A stretch of 64,000 nt of DNA from Oikopleura dioica (Eukaryota; Animalia; Chordata). Of the stretch, positions 1,517 through 64,000 are shown in pieces; the first letter of the stretch is position 1, and each line of letters starts with the position of its first letter. The DNA lies in NCBI GenBank assembly GCA_907165135.1, contig OU015566.1:12648001-12712000 (forward strand), read 5' to 3'. The notes below the pieces were generated by a model. It saw nothing but the letters and a program-made list of their open reading frames with translations. It made no database searches and was not told the DNA's origin. The position numbers were made by a program, and so were the translations under genes.

Positions 1517-2706
1517 AGGATTAACGAGGGCCCATTGTTAAAAGAAACAGATTAAGAAGGGATACCCTTATAAATTGAGGAAAGAAATTCGTTATTTTTG
1601 AAGCTTTTCCTGAATATTTCTTTGATGACTCATCTTTGAGTAAATTTGTCTCTGTAGTAAAATTCGTCTGACTGAAACAATCATGTTCTTTCTTCGATTC
1701 TCTTTGTAGAAATCGTAATTAATACAACTTCAAGCTTCAAGTTCAAAAAGCCATTCACTGTAAAATGGAGCCAATGAGGAGTCGTATTCAAAATTGGCGC
1801 GCGATTGGAGGATTGAATTTTTGTAGTGAATCGGGTCGATCCGCCCGAGCTGCCAGAATCCTACGCAGCGCCGCGGGCAATGAAAAATGGGAGAAATTGA
1901 AAAGAAAAATGGCGAAAAAAACGCAAGAAAGAGAAAAAATGAATAATGAACAAGAAGAACTTCACGAAAGATGAATGATTCATCAGAGGGATTTATTACG
2001 AAGCAGAATAACGGCGATTTTATGAAAAAAAGAGAAAATTGAATAAAAAAATGGAGAGAAAAAGAAAATATTGCTGAAGAAAATTTATTATTCATGAAAA
2101 TTTTAAAATGAAACTGTTGGAAGATAATCTATTACAACCCCCTATTCGGTTTGATAATTTTTTTATATTAAAATGAAGCTAAAATTGCAGTAACAATTTC
2201 CGACCATTCGCTTATATTGCTTTTAAAAATGTTATAAAATGAACTTACTGAATAATTCTTAACTATTCGTATTGTACCGTCTGGTGTTTTTTATTGATGA
2301 AAATTTTTAAAATGAAAAATCTACATTATAAATAAAGTTGTTTATGCGGCTCGATCCACATGTGAGATCAAATGTATTAAAACTGATAATTAAATCTTTT
2401 TTTCTGCAAATTATAAAATTTGATATTTTAATAAAATGACACTGCTGCGAGAGTAGTTCCCACTCACGGATAAAAGAATTGATAAAATATTATAAAAAGA
2501 AATTACTGAATAAATACTCTTCTCTCAATGTTGAAAGTATATATTAAAATGAATGAAACTTCAATGTTAAAATACTTATTAGTAAGTGAGCTACCGGCTT
2601 ATTTGTGTTCAAAATTTCAATATTAAAATAATATACTATTCCTGTTACTTTACTGTTTATTTTATTAAGAGCCTGTTCTCATATCCATTTCATATTCAGA
2701 TGAAAA

Positions 2707-4380
2707 ATGGCGCGGGGTAAAAAGGATTCGGAAGAATCGAGCAATTCTTCGGAATCGGTTCAGTCTTCTGAAGCTGAATCTGATTCCATCCGAAGCCGCT
2801 CCAAGGAAAGAAAGCGCGAAAAGAAAGCAAAGAAAAAGTCGAAAAAGGCATCGAAAGATCGGAAGAAGAAATCTAAGAAAAGCCATCACAGATCTAGGTA
2901 AAGTAGCGACCCAATTCTAAAATGAAATTATATAATTGCTTCAAAATTGAGCTCAAAGAAGACTTTTTTGTGAAAGAATTTGTTTTCCGTGCTAATAATT
3001 AGTTAGCTATTCTATTTTTAGCTCGCGATCCAAAAGCCGCGAGAAAAAGTCCAAGAAGCGAAAAGATTCCAGAGCAGGGCTGGATATTTTGAAATCAACA
3101 AAAATCTCGAACCCCGAAAAAAACATGAATCATCATCTCATCCATTTCAAAAATGCAATCTCAGAAAATTTTCTGTCTGAGATCTCAATTTTCGATTTTG
3201 CAAAAAAATGATATTTGAAATGCTGAGATCTCAATTATCTCAGAAAACTGCGTGAGTTGGATACGCGCGTTGCAATGAAATGAAATTTGAAATTCTGAGA
3301 TCTCAAGCATTTCAGGTCCATCTGAACCAATCACAAGTCTTGCTCTAAGCCCGCGACATTTGTCCGCGGCCCTTGCGCGGTTTGCAAAATTTTGAGATTT
3401 GAGATCTCGAGATCTCAGCAATCTCAAGAATGGAAAAAATTATGACGAGGGAGTTGCAATAATATTGAAATTTGAGATTTGTTGAGATGGTGCAAAATTT
3501 TGACATAGAAATGAAATTTCACACAAAAATTGATTTGAAATTTTTGCTGATTTCAAAATATCCAGCCCTGTTCCAGAGACTCTCGCGATTCGAGAAAAGC
3601 AAAGAAAAGAGGATCCCGCTCGCGCTCTCGTTCTCCACTTTCTTTGAAGCGAAGACATTCATCAAGAGCGAGCCCCCCGCCACCGCGACGAAGAAGCCGA
3701 TCTAATGACAGGTCGAGATCAAGGCGATCGCCTCCCAGAAGATCTCCTCTTAGGCGAAGATCACCGCCCAGGGAAAGATATCGCTCAAGAAGGTAAATGA
3801 CCGAGAATGTCGATTTTGAAAATCTAAAATAATTTAAAATTTACCGATTTATGATCACTTATTTCTAAAAATCATCATCGAATTCTAGCTCCCGATCTCG
3901 CGAACGCGATCGTCGAATTTCCACCACCTCGAGCCGCTCGCATCAGTCAGATTACTCCCGGAAACGCTCGCCAGTTTCTCGCCCCATCAAGGTTGAATCC
4001 CCAGACATTTCAATTAAAAACAAACGCGTCTATATTTAGACCTTCGCTCCCAAATGCGATCTCTCAGCACTAAAAATCCTGCCGGGCGGGTCGACCTACA
4101 AGCCCGAAATGAACGAAGATCAACAGATCCAAGAGCAGCTCAATAATTTCGTATCCAAGGTAGGCGTAACCGGCCCTGTTAACTACACCAGCGTCACCTG
4201 CCCTATTGATCCGGACACTGTTATTACGGAAATGAACACCAAAAAGAACTCGGTCAAGGCAGATAGGCCCAGGTTTTCAAAATGCTCATTTTGGAGAATT
4301 CTAGCGGCTCAGGAATCCAGAGCTGTCACCTTTGGGCCGACTCTCTTCTATCGCCCCTGATACCCTTAAAGCATCGCTGA
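2707..4380 (+). CDS. RS-domain (SR-related) nuclear protein, interrupted in its second exon by a hAT-like element
   Basis: Exons 2707-2897, 3022-3077, 3579-~3792, ~3888-3991, ~4040 onward give a continuous K/R/S-rich frame (..KRKDSR[A]DSRDSRKAKKRGSRSRSRSP..). The last exon frame is ambiguous (stop at 4380 or ~4403). Confidence 0.7.
3075..3570. mobile_element. Non-autonomous hAT-like element (496 bp) with 8-bp TSD
   Basis: TIR cagggctggatattttgaaatca(a/g)caaaaa at both ends (30 bp, 1 mismatch). Direct repeat TTCCAGAG at 3067-3074 and 3571-3578. Interior rich in palindromic GAGATCTC motifs. Confidence 0.92.
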
Positions 4381-4771
4381 ATCTTAAGGACATCCACCCA
4401 TAAATTCGACCCGCTTTTCGACCGGTCAAATTTGTAGAGCTTATAACCTCCAGCTCTGGAGACTGAGACCTAGATGCTTATAAAATATAAGAACAAATGA
4501 AAACTTTGTGAAACCCCTAAACAGCTTTCTCACACAACAGCATCCATACAGATAGATCGACTGCCAGAACGAAGAAAAATCAGGGCCACTGTGGATGGTG
4601 AAATTAATAAACAAAAACAATGCACCCAATTACTATTTTTTCTTCTCCTATTTTATCTTGTTAGGATAAACGTTACCCTCTCTCTATTTTTCTTTAGTAA
4701 AAAACAGAACTTTGTTTGTCACGCCAAAAGGATCACGTAGCCCTAACCTTACTTTTAGATAGAAGTTGAGA

Positions 4772-7700
4772 ATGAATCGCCACGGAAGCGGAAACCTACG
4801 TTTCAAGTGTCGGGTCGGATTTAATCTTACTGATAGATTTTTTCGTCTATTTCCATTTTTATTACCCCTATGTTAGACTTTTTCGGACAGGAGTCTGATG
4901 AAGAAGTAGCAAAACCAACTGCACGAAGTTCTCGTCTGACGAGTCTAAATGGCCTCGACGAAGTTTTCTGCAACTCTAACGACGGAGATGCGAAATGGAA
5001 AGCCGTCGTTCCTCCAGCAACTCAAGTTGGCCCGCCAAAATTGACAAGAGCGCCGAAGATTGAAAACAACAACGAACCAGTTCCAGCTCCAGTCGCACAG
5101 ATGCCTCATCTTATCCCAATGCCTGGAATGGATGTCAAGGAAGAAGATGTCTTTATCGACGAAAACTCACAAAAATATCAAGTCAAAACAGAAAACGCTG
5201 ATCCTGATGTGCTCTCTGATGGAATGGACATTTCTGATTCGGACGAATACGACGAAGAAGAGGTAGTACACTAAAAATACCATCTGTTTTAACAATTTTC
5301 TTCAGAGAAATTTCATCAACAACTCGACTTACTCCGTTGAAACCGGCCAAACTCCTGTCAAGCGAGAGCCTCCTCCGCTAAAATCGCGCCCCCCTCCTCC
5401 CCTTTCTCGACGAAAATCCCATTTTTCAAACGACCACTTTTGCCCAGATTCCTCTCCTCCCGACCTATCCGGTCCGCCAAAGCTCGCAGCAGCGCCAGGT
5501 GTTCTTGAAGACAGTTCTCCTCCGCCAGAAAACGGTCCACCAAAGCTCGAGCCTGCCCCGAAAGTACTTAGTGCTCAAGAATTCAACGCTTATCAATCAC
5601 CGCCAAGATCACTGAAACAAGAAAAAATCGACGAAGCTAATAAGCGACTCAGACCGCCGCCAATCCCAAAGTTCACCTTGCTCAAAGAACCTCAATATCA
5701 TTGTAACAAAGACTTCGTTCGCGCTGGAAAAGATACCCGCGATTTGGACTGCGAATGCCGCCTCCCCAAGGATCGCCGAGAAATCTGCTGCGGAGAAGAG
5801 TGTCTTAACCGAGCTCTGATGGTCGAATGCAGCAACAGATGTAGAACCGGCGATCGTTGTACTAACAAGAACTTCCAACGTCGAAAATACGCGCCCACGG
5901 AAGTCTTCTGGGCCGAGGGCAAAGGCCACGGACTCAGGGCAACAGCCTTCATCCCCCGAGGGACGTTTATAATCGAGTATCTCGGGGAAGTTGTGAGCGC
6001 AAAAGAATTCAAAAAGAGATCGCACGAATACGCGCGCAACGGGAAGAAGCATCACTACTTCATGGAGCTCTCGCGACAGGCGACGATTGACGCTTATCAA
6101 AAAGGTGCCGTGTCGAGGTTTATCAATCACTCCTGCGAGCCAAATGCAGAAACGCAAAAATGGACCGTCAATGGGCTCCTACGAATTGGTTTCTTCGCGA
6201 TCAGAGATATTCATCCAGGGGAAGAAATCACCTTTGATTACCAATTTATTCACTTTGGACAGGGTCAGAAATGTCTCTGCGGGGCGCCTTCGTGCCGTGG
6301 TATTATCGGCAGGGAGGCTGATCGAATCCCTGCCCAAAGAAAAGCGGGGGACAAGGAGGAAGACGAGAATTATGGCAAGCTCATTCTAAGTACGATTTTG
6401 ACTTTTCGTTTTCCTTTATTTACTAATTTTCTGATCAGATACGAGGAGGGTAGACTGCTCAGAAGATATGGAGAAACTTGCTAGGAACATGTCTAGAACT
6501 TCCTCAAGAGAAATAAAAGCGAAATTGAAAGCCCTCGACCTCATTTTGGTAAAGAAACATCATCTTTATCCTCTCTGATGCGTATTTTCAGAACTCAAGT
6601 AAAAAATTGCAGTCTGTCTTCATGACCAACTTCGGGCTCGAGATCCTCTGGAGCTACGCGAAAGAAGTCCACTTAGACGACAATGCGCTCAAGCATGACC
6701 TACTCAGGTAATATACCTATAAATCGACGTCTGTCAATTTGAATATCGTTGTTTTAGGCTACTTGGCGACCTAGAAATCTCACACCGCGATAAGGTTGAA
6801 GATAATGGGCTGATTGAGATTATTGATAAATGGTCCAAAATTGAGGACAAGTATCAAGAGAAAAGCTTGAGTATAGTAACGAAATGGAAGAGGCTCACTA
6901 GGCGTGTTCCACTGAAACGGGAAGCGACCCCTCCTGCAGAACCTGAACGAGAACCAACTCCTCCGCCGATGCCAACACTAACTCGCAGAGATTCAATTCG
7001 AAGACGAAGTCCCAGACTAGCGAAGGAACCATCTCCTGAGGCTGAAAGAAGTCCTGAGATGGTGCCAGAGACTTGGCGAAAGATTAAAGAAGATCGCAGA
7101 AGGCAATTCGAAGAGAATGTTAGAAGAAGGGACGAACAAGAAGCGCATTTCAGGGAAATCGCCAAGCAAAATGTTGATCAAATGGTACTCGACGCAATGA
7201 ATGAATCAGACAATGAAAACGACGAATTTCATAATCATCATGATCCAAGAACATCAACAGATTCAGCAGTTCTGCCAAATGAGATGGAAAATTCAACTGA
7301 AAACATAGAGGATTTCATACCAGACTCACCGCAAGGAAATCCATACAATGACCCGGCTCATTGGGAAGCAGATGAACAGCGAGATTACATAAAGCGGATT
7401 ATGCAGGATCTAAAACCATCAGAAGACGATGAAATAATCTGTGACGGCGCGGGCTGCGTCGTCTCCAGAGACGATCAAGGCGGACTAATGGTTTATATCC
7501 GCGCTGAAGATGTTGAAGATTTCGAACAGACCTGGAGAGACGGCAAGAAATACCAGGAAAAGAAGGAACGCGCGAAGAAAGAGAAAAAAGACGCCGACGC
7601 GGCAGAGCTCGAGCGTAAAATTGCACAATCGATGGAAACTACAGTAGCTCCCGCAGATACAACTGTCGCAAATGGAGATGCTGTTCCCGACGAAATGCTG

Positions 7701-8167
7701 CCCGACGGCTGGAAATCGCACAAAGATGACGAAGGCTCGACTTATTACTACCACGATAAAACACGCGAAACGAGCTGGGACCCGCCACAAATGAGCAAAG
7801 AAGAGTACGAAACGAAGATCGGAAAACTCAGACGCATGCTTTGTAAGTTCATCGCCGAGGTTCTTCTTGCTTATCGCGATGAAAGCACGACGCACGGGCG
7901 AATAACTAACGAAGCTGATTACAAATATCTGATACGAAGGTTGTCCCATGGCTTGAGCAAAAGAATCACGACAGAGCTGAATACATTTCGACTCACAGAG
8001 GAAGGCAAAATGATGGCTGCTAAATACAGGTACTTACTATCGACTTTCAAAATGCAGGAGATGACCACTCCTTTAGCCATAAATATATGACGCGCCAAGG
8101 TGAATGTTATATAAGAAGGCCTTCTACTCAGAAACCACCGTCAGCCCCAACCAGTACTGTATCCTGA
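4772..8167 (+). CDS. SETD2: Histone H3K36 methyltransferase SETD2/Set2
   Basis: AWS (CECR..ICCGEECLNR..ECSNRC), SET (KGHGLRA, FIIEYLGEV, RFINHSCEPN, GEEITFDY), post-SET (CLCGAPSCRG), WW (LPDGWKSHKDDEGSTYYYHDKTRETSWDPP) and C-terminal SRI-like region, joined by short introns. Start at 4772 or 4870. Confidence 0.95.
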
Positions 8168-56500: not shown

Positions 56501-56858
56501 GAGTAGGCTTCACTTGGACAAGAGCTTCACTTGGACAGAGCTTCATTTGGACAGAAGCTTCACTTGGACAAGATTTTTACGAATTTCAAAAACGACTATA
56601 TATGAATAACGTAACTAATAATAAATTATTATGGCGAAATTTCATTAATAATTAACACTATAAGATGTTTTTCTTTATCTAAAAAGTGAAAAATACCATA
56701 TTATCACCAATAAATTTATTTATAAGATGTTTATGGAAGAAACTTGCAAATTTTATAAAAAGCGTTACTTTCTTCCTAAGAATCGTACGTAAAATTCGTA
56801 AAGAGGACCTTTAAAAAATCTTGTCCAAGTGAAGCTTCTGTCCAAGTGAAGCCTACCC
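56501..56858. mobile_element. Mutator-like MITE (358 bp) with 9-bp TSD
   Basis: Ends g(a/g)gtaggcttcacttggaca.. inverted, with tandem (A)GCTTCACTTGGACA subterminal units. Direct repeat AAATTCGAT at 56492-56500 and 56859-56867. Confidence 0.8.
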
Positions 56859-57628: not shown

Positions 57629-58345
57629 CAGAGTTTGAAATGCTCGCAAATGCTCGCGAGCGCAAAGAGCGAGAGCAAAAATTTATCATTGCTCTGAGAG
57701 CAGGAGAGCGGGAGCATGAAAATAAAGTTGCTCGAGAGCCAAAAGAGCGCGAGCCCAAATTTGAAACCGCTCGCGAGCGCGGAAAGCACGAGCGCATATG
57801 TTGGCAATGCTCGGGAGCTAGACGAGCGGGAGCGGCTGCTCTCGTGCTCGCCATGGAATTGACTCACGAGCGGCTCGCGAGCAAAATTAAAGGAACAATT
57901 TTTTGCGTTATTATTCACTTTCATGGATAAATTTCTCTCGTGGATCAATTTTTCGTGTTTCCGATTTGTGCAAGCTTCATTAGGTCCGTAATCTCGGCAG
58001 CGGAACGCGAAAAGCCGAGAGTAAATAGATAAAAGATGCCCACCGCGAAGTGCTAACTCCTGTGAGAGGGACTCATTTGGAATTTGTTACGGGGTCGCCG
58101 AATCATTTTAGGCTCTTGAAAGCTGCTCGCGAGTCAGATTTTTCAGCTCGCGAGCCAATCGAGCGAGAGCAAAATTTGACCAGTGCTCGGGAGCCAGGAG
58201 AGCGAGAGCGCGAAATGAAATGTGCTCACGAGCGCAAAGAGCGCGAACGCTGAAATAAATGCGCTCGGGAGCACAAAGAGCATCATGCTCGTGCTCGCTC
58301 GCTCTCAAGTGAGCCGCTCGCGAGTCTCGAAAATTTCAAACTCTG
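57629..58345. mobile_element. Non-autonomous hAT-like element (717 bp) with 8-bp TSD
   Basis: Perfect 13-bp TIR CAGAGTTTGAAAT. TGCGAGTC at 57621-57628 and 58346-58353. Interior packed with GCTCGCGAGC/GAGCGCG motifs. Confidence 0.9.
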
Positions 58346-61982: not shown

Positions 61983-64000
61983 TTAGGAATTATGCGGCTT
62001 TTTCTCTTCTTACCGCGGTCAAATCTTCTGGATCGGTCGAGACTTTCTTTGAAGATTTGTAGTAAAAGACCTGAACGACTGTAAGAGAGATTTTCAAGGT
62101 ATTCTACCTGGCAGATGATAAGGCAATCGACTGTAACTTGGATTGAGCCACAGAGAATAAATTGGAAAGGCTGATTCAGAAAGACGAAATATCCTGTTTT
62201 GAAGATATCCCCAACGAGCCAGCCGAGAACCATGAACATTGACATTCCAGTCGCTAAAATAACTGTAAAAGGGTTCCCAAGCTACTTGTCTTACTTGAAC
62301 TATTCTGGTAGTTTTTCCATAGCTGAGGCGTGGCAAGAAGGGATTCTGTTCCTAGCGCGAGGAAACCAAGGATATTGAAGTAACTGGCTACAATTGAGTT
62401 TGGGAGTTGAAATATTCACGATACTCTTACGTGAGTGAAGAAAAACATAAGTGGTAAATGCAACAACGATCCAAAAAAGAACCATGAACTGGAGGTAATC
62501 AACAAAATACGTCCAGTTCCAGAACTCCTCTGGTTTCAGGCAGGGCTGCACAATTGGATTGGAATCCAATTGGTTTCCAATTCCAATTGGATTGGATTGG
62601 TAAATTGGTTGGAAAAAGGGCGGGAAAATCAGGGTCTGTCCAATTGGACAGCCCTTCCAATTGGAAAATGGGGGTCCAATTGGCAACTGGTAGCCAATTG
62701 GTAAATTGGCAAAATGATTGGATCGAAGCACCTCTTTTCACGCGGAAATGCCAAATTATGCTTGAATTAGTGCCTCAAACGATCAGTTCGTCAACAATTT
62801 TCTCAAAAAATCGAAAATTTCAAAACAGCCATATTTTGGCTTCTTAGTGTGCCTGAAAGTTCAATTCATCATAAAAACTTGTTGACCAGGGAGCACTTTT
62901 TGACCAATAAAAATCCAAAATTTTAGCGAAATTGGGACTTTTTCGTCAAAAAGTCCGATTTTCAAACGCGATTTTGAGGGCTTGCCAAACTGCCTGAAAG
63001 CGCCTATATTGCCCAAATGTCCGAAATGCCCGCTCTTGCCCGGCCAAATTTTATGGGCTTAGCTGTCCGAATGCTCGGCCGAACCCTTTTTCCCCGAATG
63101 CCCGATGCCGATTCGCTTTAACCCCTATACGCGAAGCTGCCTAAAGAACCCCCTTACCCGAAGTGTACAATTTTTGTCGATTTGGCCTTCCTCTCAAGAT
63201 AATCTTTTCAAAGTATCAGATTATACTAAATCTATCATTATCTTTCGAACTGCACTTTTACATTTTCGGTAAAATTGATATTTAGTGCTAAAATTGGGGA
63301 AAGAAATTTTAACACTATAAAATTTATTATGTGATAATTATGAAAAATACTCATCTGAGCCATTTTTAACGGTGATTTTCGAATTCTCCATACTAAAAAA
63401 CCTAAGAATAAACTAAAACTGAAGCAAAAATGAGAAAAGGGAATTTTTTTCTTCCTTGGAGCGCGCGAGGTGGCGTGAGAAAATCAGTACTGGTGCAGTG
63501 CTCACTGGGCTTATCACGCGGAAATTTTGCGGAAAGGTGGGCAAGTCTTGTGCAAATACTCATTTGAGTTTTCAGGTCATTCTGACCCACCAGCTCCATT
63601 GGGCGAGCGACTATATCCCGAAATCGACAAAAATTGTACACTTCGGGTATAGGGGTTAAAAATTCTCTCGTTTGTTAATTTTAAAGGATTATTTAAAAAT
63701 TTTAATTTAAAATTTAAATGAACTAAAAAAAAACTGACTTTTCCAATTAGAATCCGATTTTCAATTGGAATTTGGCTGTCCAATTGGCAAACTCGTGCTA
63801 ATTGGAAGCAAGATTCCAATTGCCGATTGGTCCGCCAAATTCCAATTGGAAATTGGAATTGGATTGGAATTTGGTTGGATTGGCAAAATTTGGGTTGGAT
63901 TGGATTGGCAGTTGGTTGGAAAAATCCAAATTTTTTTGCCAATTGTGCAGCCCTGGTTTCAGGTCGGCCATATATCGCTCAGAGCCATTTTTCTTGCTGT
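61983..64000 (-). CDS. SLC66A2: PQ-loop repeat protein PQLC1/SLC66A2, 3' part (5' runs off window), interrupted by a hAT-like element
   Basis: ERYMADLKP|EEFWNWTYFVDYLQF..ILGFLALGTESLLATPQLWKNY..GMSMFMVLGWLVGDIFKTGYF..QFILCGSIQVTVDCLII matches the PQLC1 second PQ-loop as recalled. Confidence 0.88.
62541..63955. mobile_element. Non-autonomous hAT-like element (1415 bp) with 8-bp TSD, composite
   Basis: Perfect 17-bp TIR CAGGGCTGCACAATTGG. GTTTCAGG at 62533-62540 and 63956-63963. Arms of ~200 bp rich in CCAATTGG/GATTGG repeats. Confidence 0.93.
63122..63655. mobile_element. piggyBac-like MITE nested in the hAT element
   Basis: TTAA at 63118-63121 and 63656-63659. Termini CCCCTATAC(G/C)CGAAG, and shared inner block ccgaagtgtacaatttttgtcgattt in inverted orientation. 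Confidence 0.8.

Follow-up and report, generated by a model that had tools for sequence, protein, structure and literature searches.

A young polymorphic hAT-type MITE insertion in an RS-rich coding exon of Oikopleura dioica, and the possibility of its removal by splicing

Exonic transposons such as Tc1 in C. elegans and Ds/dSpm in maize are spliced out at cryptic sites in or near their ends. Like them, the element described here is a DNA transposon within an exon, and its removal close to the ends could leave small in-frame footprints; however, those cases were shown by cDNA of mutant alleles, whereas the RNA seen at our site comes from non-carriers. In structure it resembles the hAT MITEs, with which it shares an 8-bp target-site duplication (TSD) fitting nTnnnnAn, a short terminal inverted repeat (TIR) with a YARNG-type CAGGG start, which we take to be a hallmark of hAT ends, internal short repeats, the lack of a transposase ORF, near-identical copies and polymorphism with a clean empty site. 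It differs in that no partner transposase gene was found within the window (the whole stretch of DNA analysed, 64,000 nucleotides) and in that the family assignment comes from TSD and TIR features and not from a catalogue match.

The kind of event considered here is already known from introners and from MITE-derived introns of Fritillaria. Introners of Micromonas, Aureococcus and dinoflagellates (reviewed in PMC11282704) are, like our element, DNA transposons with TIR and TSD in coding sequence in which the element could supply one splice site and the TSD the other, as the first-pass annotation proposed; they are defined, however, by splicing and by many similar introns in different genes, whereas at this locus we find a polymorphic insertion and transcripts that come from empty alleles. 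In Fritillaria borealis, a larvacean of a related group, the MITE-derived introns of Henriet et al. 2019, as summarised in PMC11282704 and PMC13326754, likewise carry TIR and TSD and are handled by a U2-type spliceosome with relaxed site choice; in the same summaries their termini are mostly AG/AC and AG/AT, with a YAY signature and a duplicated U2AF, whereas the verified introns of our host gene are GT..AG (three) and GC..AG (one). If spliced, the element would work like an introner or a Fritillaria-type MITE intron (PMC11282704, PMC13326754).

The element lies in coding exon 2 of an RS/KS-rich gene. The model of this gene was built from the junctions of metatranscriptome contigs, from translation and from an orthologous polyadenylated mRNA contig of a public RNA run (L006), which confirmed it over its whole length. 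The features are as follows.

2707-4555, plus strand: RS/KS-rich host gene, ~272 aa
2707-2897, 3022-3792 (interrupted by the element), 3889-3991, 4040-4266 and 4525-4555, plus strand: host-gene exons, with stop TAG at 4553-4555
3067-3074, plus strand: left copy of the TSD, TTCCAGAG, 8 bp, exact, with T at position 2 and A at position 7
3075-3570, unstranded: hAT-like non-autonomous element (MITE), no ORF longer than 80 aa
3075-3097, plus strand: left TIR, 23 nt perfect, CAGGGCTGGATATTTTGAAATCA, beginning with CAGGG
3178-3417, unstranded: zone of palindromic GAGATCTC motifs, at 3179, 3225, 3297, 3401 and 3409; repeat families D1 and D6
3209-3211, plus strand: TGA, first in-frame stop on read-through into the element, after ~120 residues
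3548-3570, minus strand: right TIR, 23 nt perfect
3571-3578, plus strand: right copy of the TSD, TTCCAGAG repeated

The N-terminal two thirds of the host protein are rich in K, R and S, while its C-terminus is non-repetitive and matched no Pfam or Atlas family; exact-protein look-ups of three ORFs of the window found none on record. Contigs from wild metatranscriptomes show that the gene is expressed. The acceptors of its four verified introns are all YAG (TAG or CAG), and the GC..AG intron, 4267-4524 (258 nt; AG|GCCCAG...AACAG|C), has a poor donor whose use is seen in the contig ends of wild samples X1 and X2. The counterpart of this intron in sister-lineage genomic contig L003 (719-797) has GT..AG ends and a length of just 79 nt. 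A SETD2-like gene at 4870-8090 (AWS, SET, WW and an SRI-like end) lies ~300 nt beyond the RS gene. We considered that the host might be the N-terminus of this SET-domain gene and rejected it: the L006 counterpart of the stop at 4553-4555 is followed by polyA, and the SET/AWS/WW gene begins at 4870.

Sequence reading and a repeat search both delimit the element as 3075-3570, 496 bp with 36% GC, and the first-pass annotation of a hAT-like insertion in coding sequence was borne out in its TSD, TIR and coordinates. The annotation had given the TIR as 30 bp; inverted ends are present, but the perfect part is 23 nt, and the ends are ~90% complementary across 37-40 nt. The window has two occurrences of the 23-mer, where shuffles give 0, and five of CAGGGCTG, where 0.94 are expected. 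All five copies of GAGATCTC in the 64-kb window fall within the element, and they may be transposase-binding repeats. The window holds no second copy of the element, and an Rfam search of 2600-4700 gave no match. The region is predicted to fold at -173.8 kcal/mol (z -7.5), with a 26-bp TIR stem enclosing the ends. Excision of the element together with one duplication (504 nt) restores K-D-S-R-D-S-R-D-S-R-K (...KKRKDSRDSRDSRKAKK...) in the only open frame, while read-through runs into the TGA at 3209-3211, as had been claimed. A young, non-autonomous hAT-type insertion in a coding exon is thus confirmed.

The empty site was found both in DNA and in RNA, and a single copy of TTCCAGAG stands there in X26, X2 and X1. 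In DNA run X26, a contig with the 3066>3571 joint has a depth of 45.5, against 44-49 for unique flanks; introns and flanks are covered at depth 38-60, indicating that X26 is genomic DNA, and it represents an individual under the same species label without the insertion. In metatranscriptome X2, one 363-nt contig joins 2703-2894, 3019-3066 and 3571-3693, with intron 1 removed as GT..AG; its 3066>3571 joint leaves out 504 nt, is ambiguous over the 8 letters of the TSD, as is the X26 joint, and is the exact empty site. A contig of metatranscriptome X1 begins at 3571 and is preceded by AAGCGAAAAGA, equal to 3056-3066, so that this loose end shows the exact empty site as well. Neither the X1 nor the X2 contig has the extra CAG predicted as a +3 nt footprint; both match the empty DNA allele. 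The sister-lineage sequences L003 (genomic) and L006 (polyA mRNA), 99% identical to each other, have an uninterrupted exon 2 (...AAAAGATTCTTTAGACTCG...; D-S-L-D-S-R) with no extra codon and with the same codon count across the site as the empty form of the window, which makes the empty site the ancestral condition and the insertion a derived one. Since the empty form is present as DNA in X26 and in L003, the X1 and X2 RNAs come from non-carriers.

[quoted passage not shown] It was rejected, given that the same form exists in DNA and that none of the nine equivalent registers of the joint (TT..TG, TC..GT, CC..TT, CA..TC, AG..CC, GA..CA, AG..AG, GC..GA and CA..AG) is GN..AG. Contig L002 starts too far downstream for the site to lie within its span, and a protein search with the RS-rich exon 2b for transcript-derived fragments across the insertion site gave no match. 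The share of sampled words of 2900-3750 was 0.83 in DNA run X25 against 0.53-0.64 in the other samples, which carry the empty site, and this suggests that at least one sample, possibly the assembled one, carries the insertion.

Over the element itself, X26 contigs reach a depth of 370-2400 against ~45 for unique DNA, 8-50x as high and corresponding to roughly 10-50 copies. One 270-nt contig at depth 324 (~7x or more that of unique DNA) is a single letter off the 496-bp element, and loose ends at 3072/3073 continue into other flanks. These near-identical, multi-copy contigs, together with the empty allele in the same DNA, indicate that the family is young and multi-copy and that the insertion is a presence/absence polymorphism. 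A family variant in X26 has 56 nt (3341-3398) replaced by TGAGATT. In oligo-dT metatranscriptome X1 a 195-nt contig covers part of the element interior (3250-3444), so some family copy is transcribed. A metagenome scan with the 23-nt TIR returned one exact match (L001, 193-215), in a bacterial-looking DNA polymerase III alpha gene on a 421-kb contig; it has no second TIR, and we read it as chance and not as a family copy.

The window sequence is present in marine plankton metatranscriptomes and metagenomes. The C-terminal ORF of the SETD2-like gene has 65% protein identity to the cluster containing Oikopleura dioica CBY21951.1, indicating a wide distance between the window lineage and the Bergen reference. 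The representative of this cluster is encoded on L003, a JGI contig whose exons are 78-89% identical to the window in nucleotides. Cryptic species have been published for O. dioica (PMC11067885), and in line with them the window appears, by its sequence, to belong to the O. dioica species complex but to a different lineage from that of the Bergen reference. Raw RNA run X10, under the same species label, yielded three mapped reads, 90-95% identical; it comes from a divergent lineage and is uninformative for the site, and none of the indexed RNA runs under that label contains the stretch.

A search of the window for perfect TIRs of at least 10 nt flanked by an 8-bp TSD gave four elements in 64 kb, two in coding sequence, one in non-coding DNA and one doubtful. 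Besides the 496-bp element these are the following.

62541-63955, host gene on the minus strand: element of 1415 bp in the PQ-loop gene PQLC1, TIR 17 nt perfect CAGGGCTGCACAATTGG, TSD GTTTCAGG, not GGTTTCAG
57629-58345: hAT-like element of 717 bp, TSD TGCGAGTC, TIR CAGAGTTTGAAATGCTCGCA, in non-coding AT-rich DNA
56562-56830: inverted-repeat-ended stretch of 269 bp flanked by palindrome GAAGCTTC

The GAAGCTTC flanks of the last may extend the inverted repeat and not be a TSD. The 496-bp element has no significant similarity to any of the three. This agrees with the earlier view of it and the PQLC1 element, whose interiors are unrelated and which have nothing significant in common beyond 8 terminal bases. 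The PQLC1 element interrupts its coding sequence five codons past the ATG; a protein search with this exon for other alleles or transcript-derived fragments gave no match. Two of the three clear young 8-bp-TSD elements of the window thus lie in coding exons, a considerable burden were every one a null allele; they could stem from a burst so recent that selection has still to remove its products, or they could be tolerated via splicing.

The anatomy of the element, its polymorphism, the empty orthologous site and the youth of its family speak for a recent, derived, polymorphic hAT MITE insertion in the RS-rich exon whose carrier allele is loss-of-function or hypomorphic unless splicing rescues it, and we consider this reading probable, with confidence that stops well short of certainty. 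On this reading a non-autonomous element of the hAT superfamily, presumably mobilised in trans, inserted very recently by cut-and-paste at the target TTCCAGAG within exon 2; the host, an RS-rich gene of an O. dioica-complex lineage, is conserved and expressed. The assembled haplotype is a carrier, and other individuals and the sister lineage have the exon intact. Carrier pre-mRNA would gain 504 nt folding into a long hairpin, and unless cryptic splicing intervened translation would be expected to stop at the TGA within the element. The carrier allele would then by default be loss-of-function or hypomorphic, and probably heterozygous or tolerated. As a counter-point to loss of function, the window lineage does splice a weak non-GT donor, that of the GC..AG intron at 4267-4524, in wild transcripts.

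It is rather unlikely, though deserving of weight, that some other pair of cryptic sites removes the element wholly or partly, in frame or not, yielding mixed isoforms of which some would be functional in a low-complexity RS region that tolerates indels. Many candidate GN..AG pairs exist, and a perfect branch-site-like TGCTGAT at 3545-3551 is followed by AGs at 3565, 3576 and 3578; moreover, the length of the RS region differs by whole codons among lineages, and the spliceosome of the window lineage appears permissive. Against this, no junction of the kind appears in the contigs, and every wild RNA has the exact empty form, for which no register of the GN..AG type exists. A broader proposal, which we regard as improbable, is that active exonic hAT MITEs are removed at once by a permissive GN-AG spliceosome, with the G-run of CAGGG serving as donor in any phase and an AG in or beside the TSD as acceptor, and that introns are here caught at birth.

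Quite improbable, in our judgement, is the specific form of splicing put forward in the first-pass annotation, by which the spliceosome would remove from transcripts of carrier alleles a GG..AG intron at 3078-3578 (501 nt), under a donor rule shared with PQLC1. The donor would be CAG|GG at TIR position +4 and the acceptor the AG ending the second TSD, with the predicted junction ...TCCAGAGCAG|ACTCTCGC.... The arithmetic is correct, in that the frame is kept, one Ala is added and no stop is met. Tunicates are recognised to have a GV/AG class of introns (PMC13326754), non-GT/AG introns are reported to make up 11-12% of the total in O. dioica (PMC8008620), and the host gene has its own poor-donor GC..AG intron. 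In PQLC1, joining CAG|GG to the CAG that lies 3 nt past the TSD would permit exact GG..AG removal, as the 11-nt direct repeat CTGAAACCAG (TSD plus CAG) restores the exact empty-site sequence. However, CAGGG offers G donors at 3077, 3078 and 3079, one per phase, and 48 stop-free in-frame GN..AG pairs lie within ~60 nt of the ends, including the canonical GT(3049)..CAG(3576); chance is therefore expected to provide some in-frame solution, and the frame fit is not diagnostic. The acceptor GAG| sits 2 nt after a better CAG| at 3576, which with the same donor shifts the frame, and differs from the YAG of the gene's four verified acceptors. Agreement of the donor with the U1 consensus is limited to positions -3 to +1 and +5, the donor is base-paired in the predicted 26-bp TIR stem, and the +3 footprint junction is absent from every contig, the contigs being from non-carriers. 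The suggestion that both elements follow one splicing rule is weak as evidence: agreement in the putative donor position has a prior of ~1 in 3, and the acceptors do not coincide, the proposed one here closing the TSD and that of PQLC1 lying 3 nt further on. Together, the sequence argues weakly for conversion of the element into a GG..AG intron.

That the element was misplaced in assembly and no animal carries an insertion at this site is very improbable, for although the only DNA sample aligned to the window (X26) is without it, a perfect 8-bp duplication of a sequence that the empty site has only once is the mark that real transposition leaves, and X25 holds more of the words of 2900-3750 than do the carriers of the empty site.

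As it stands, the locus is an unexceptional example of a young, polymorphic transposon insertion that interrupts a coding exon. If carriers do splice the element, presence and absence alleles within one species would provide a direct test of transposon-to-intron conversion in an animal. In Fritillaria and among the introners of algae and dinoflagellates, such conversion has been deduced mostly from fixed copies. And if exonic MITEs are indeed promptly removed as GN-AG introns, intron birth would be observable in a culturable chordate.
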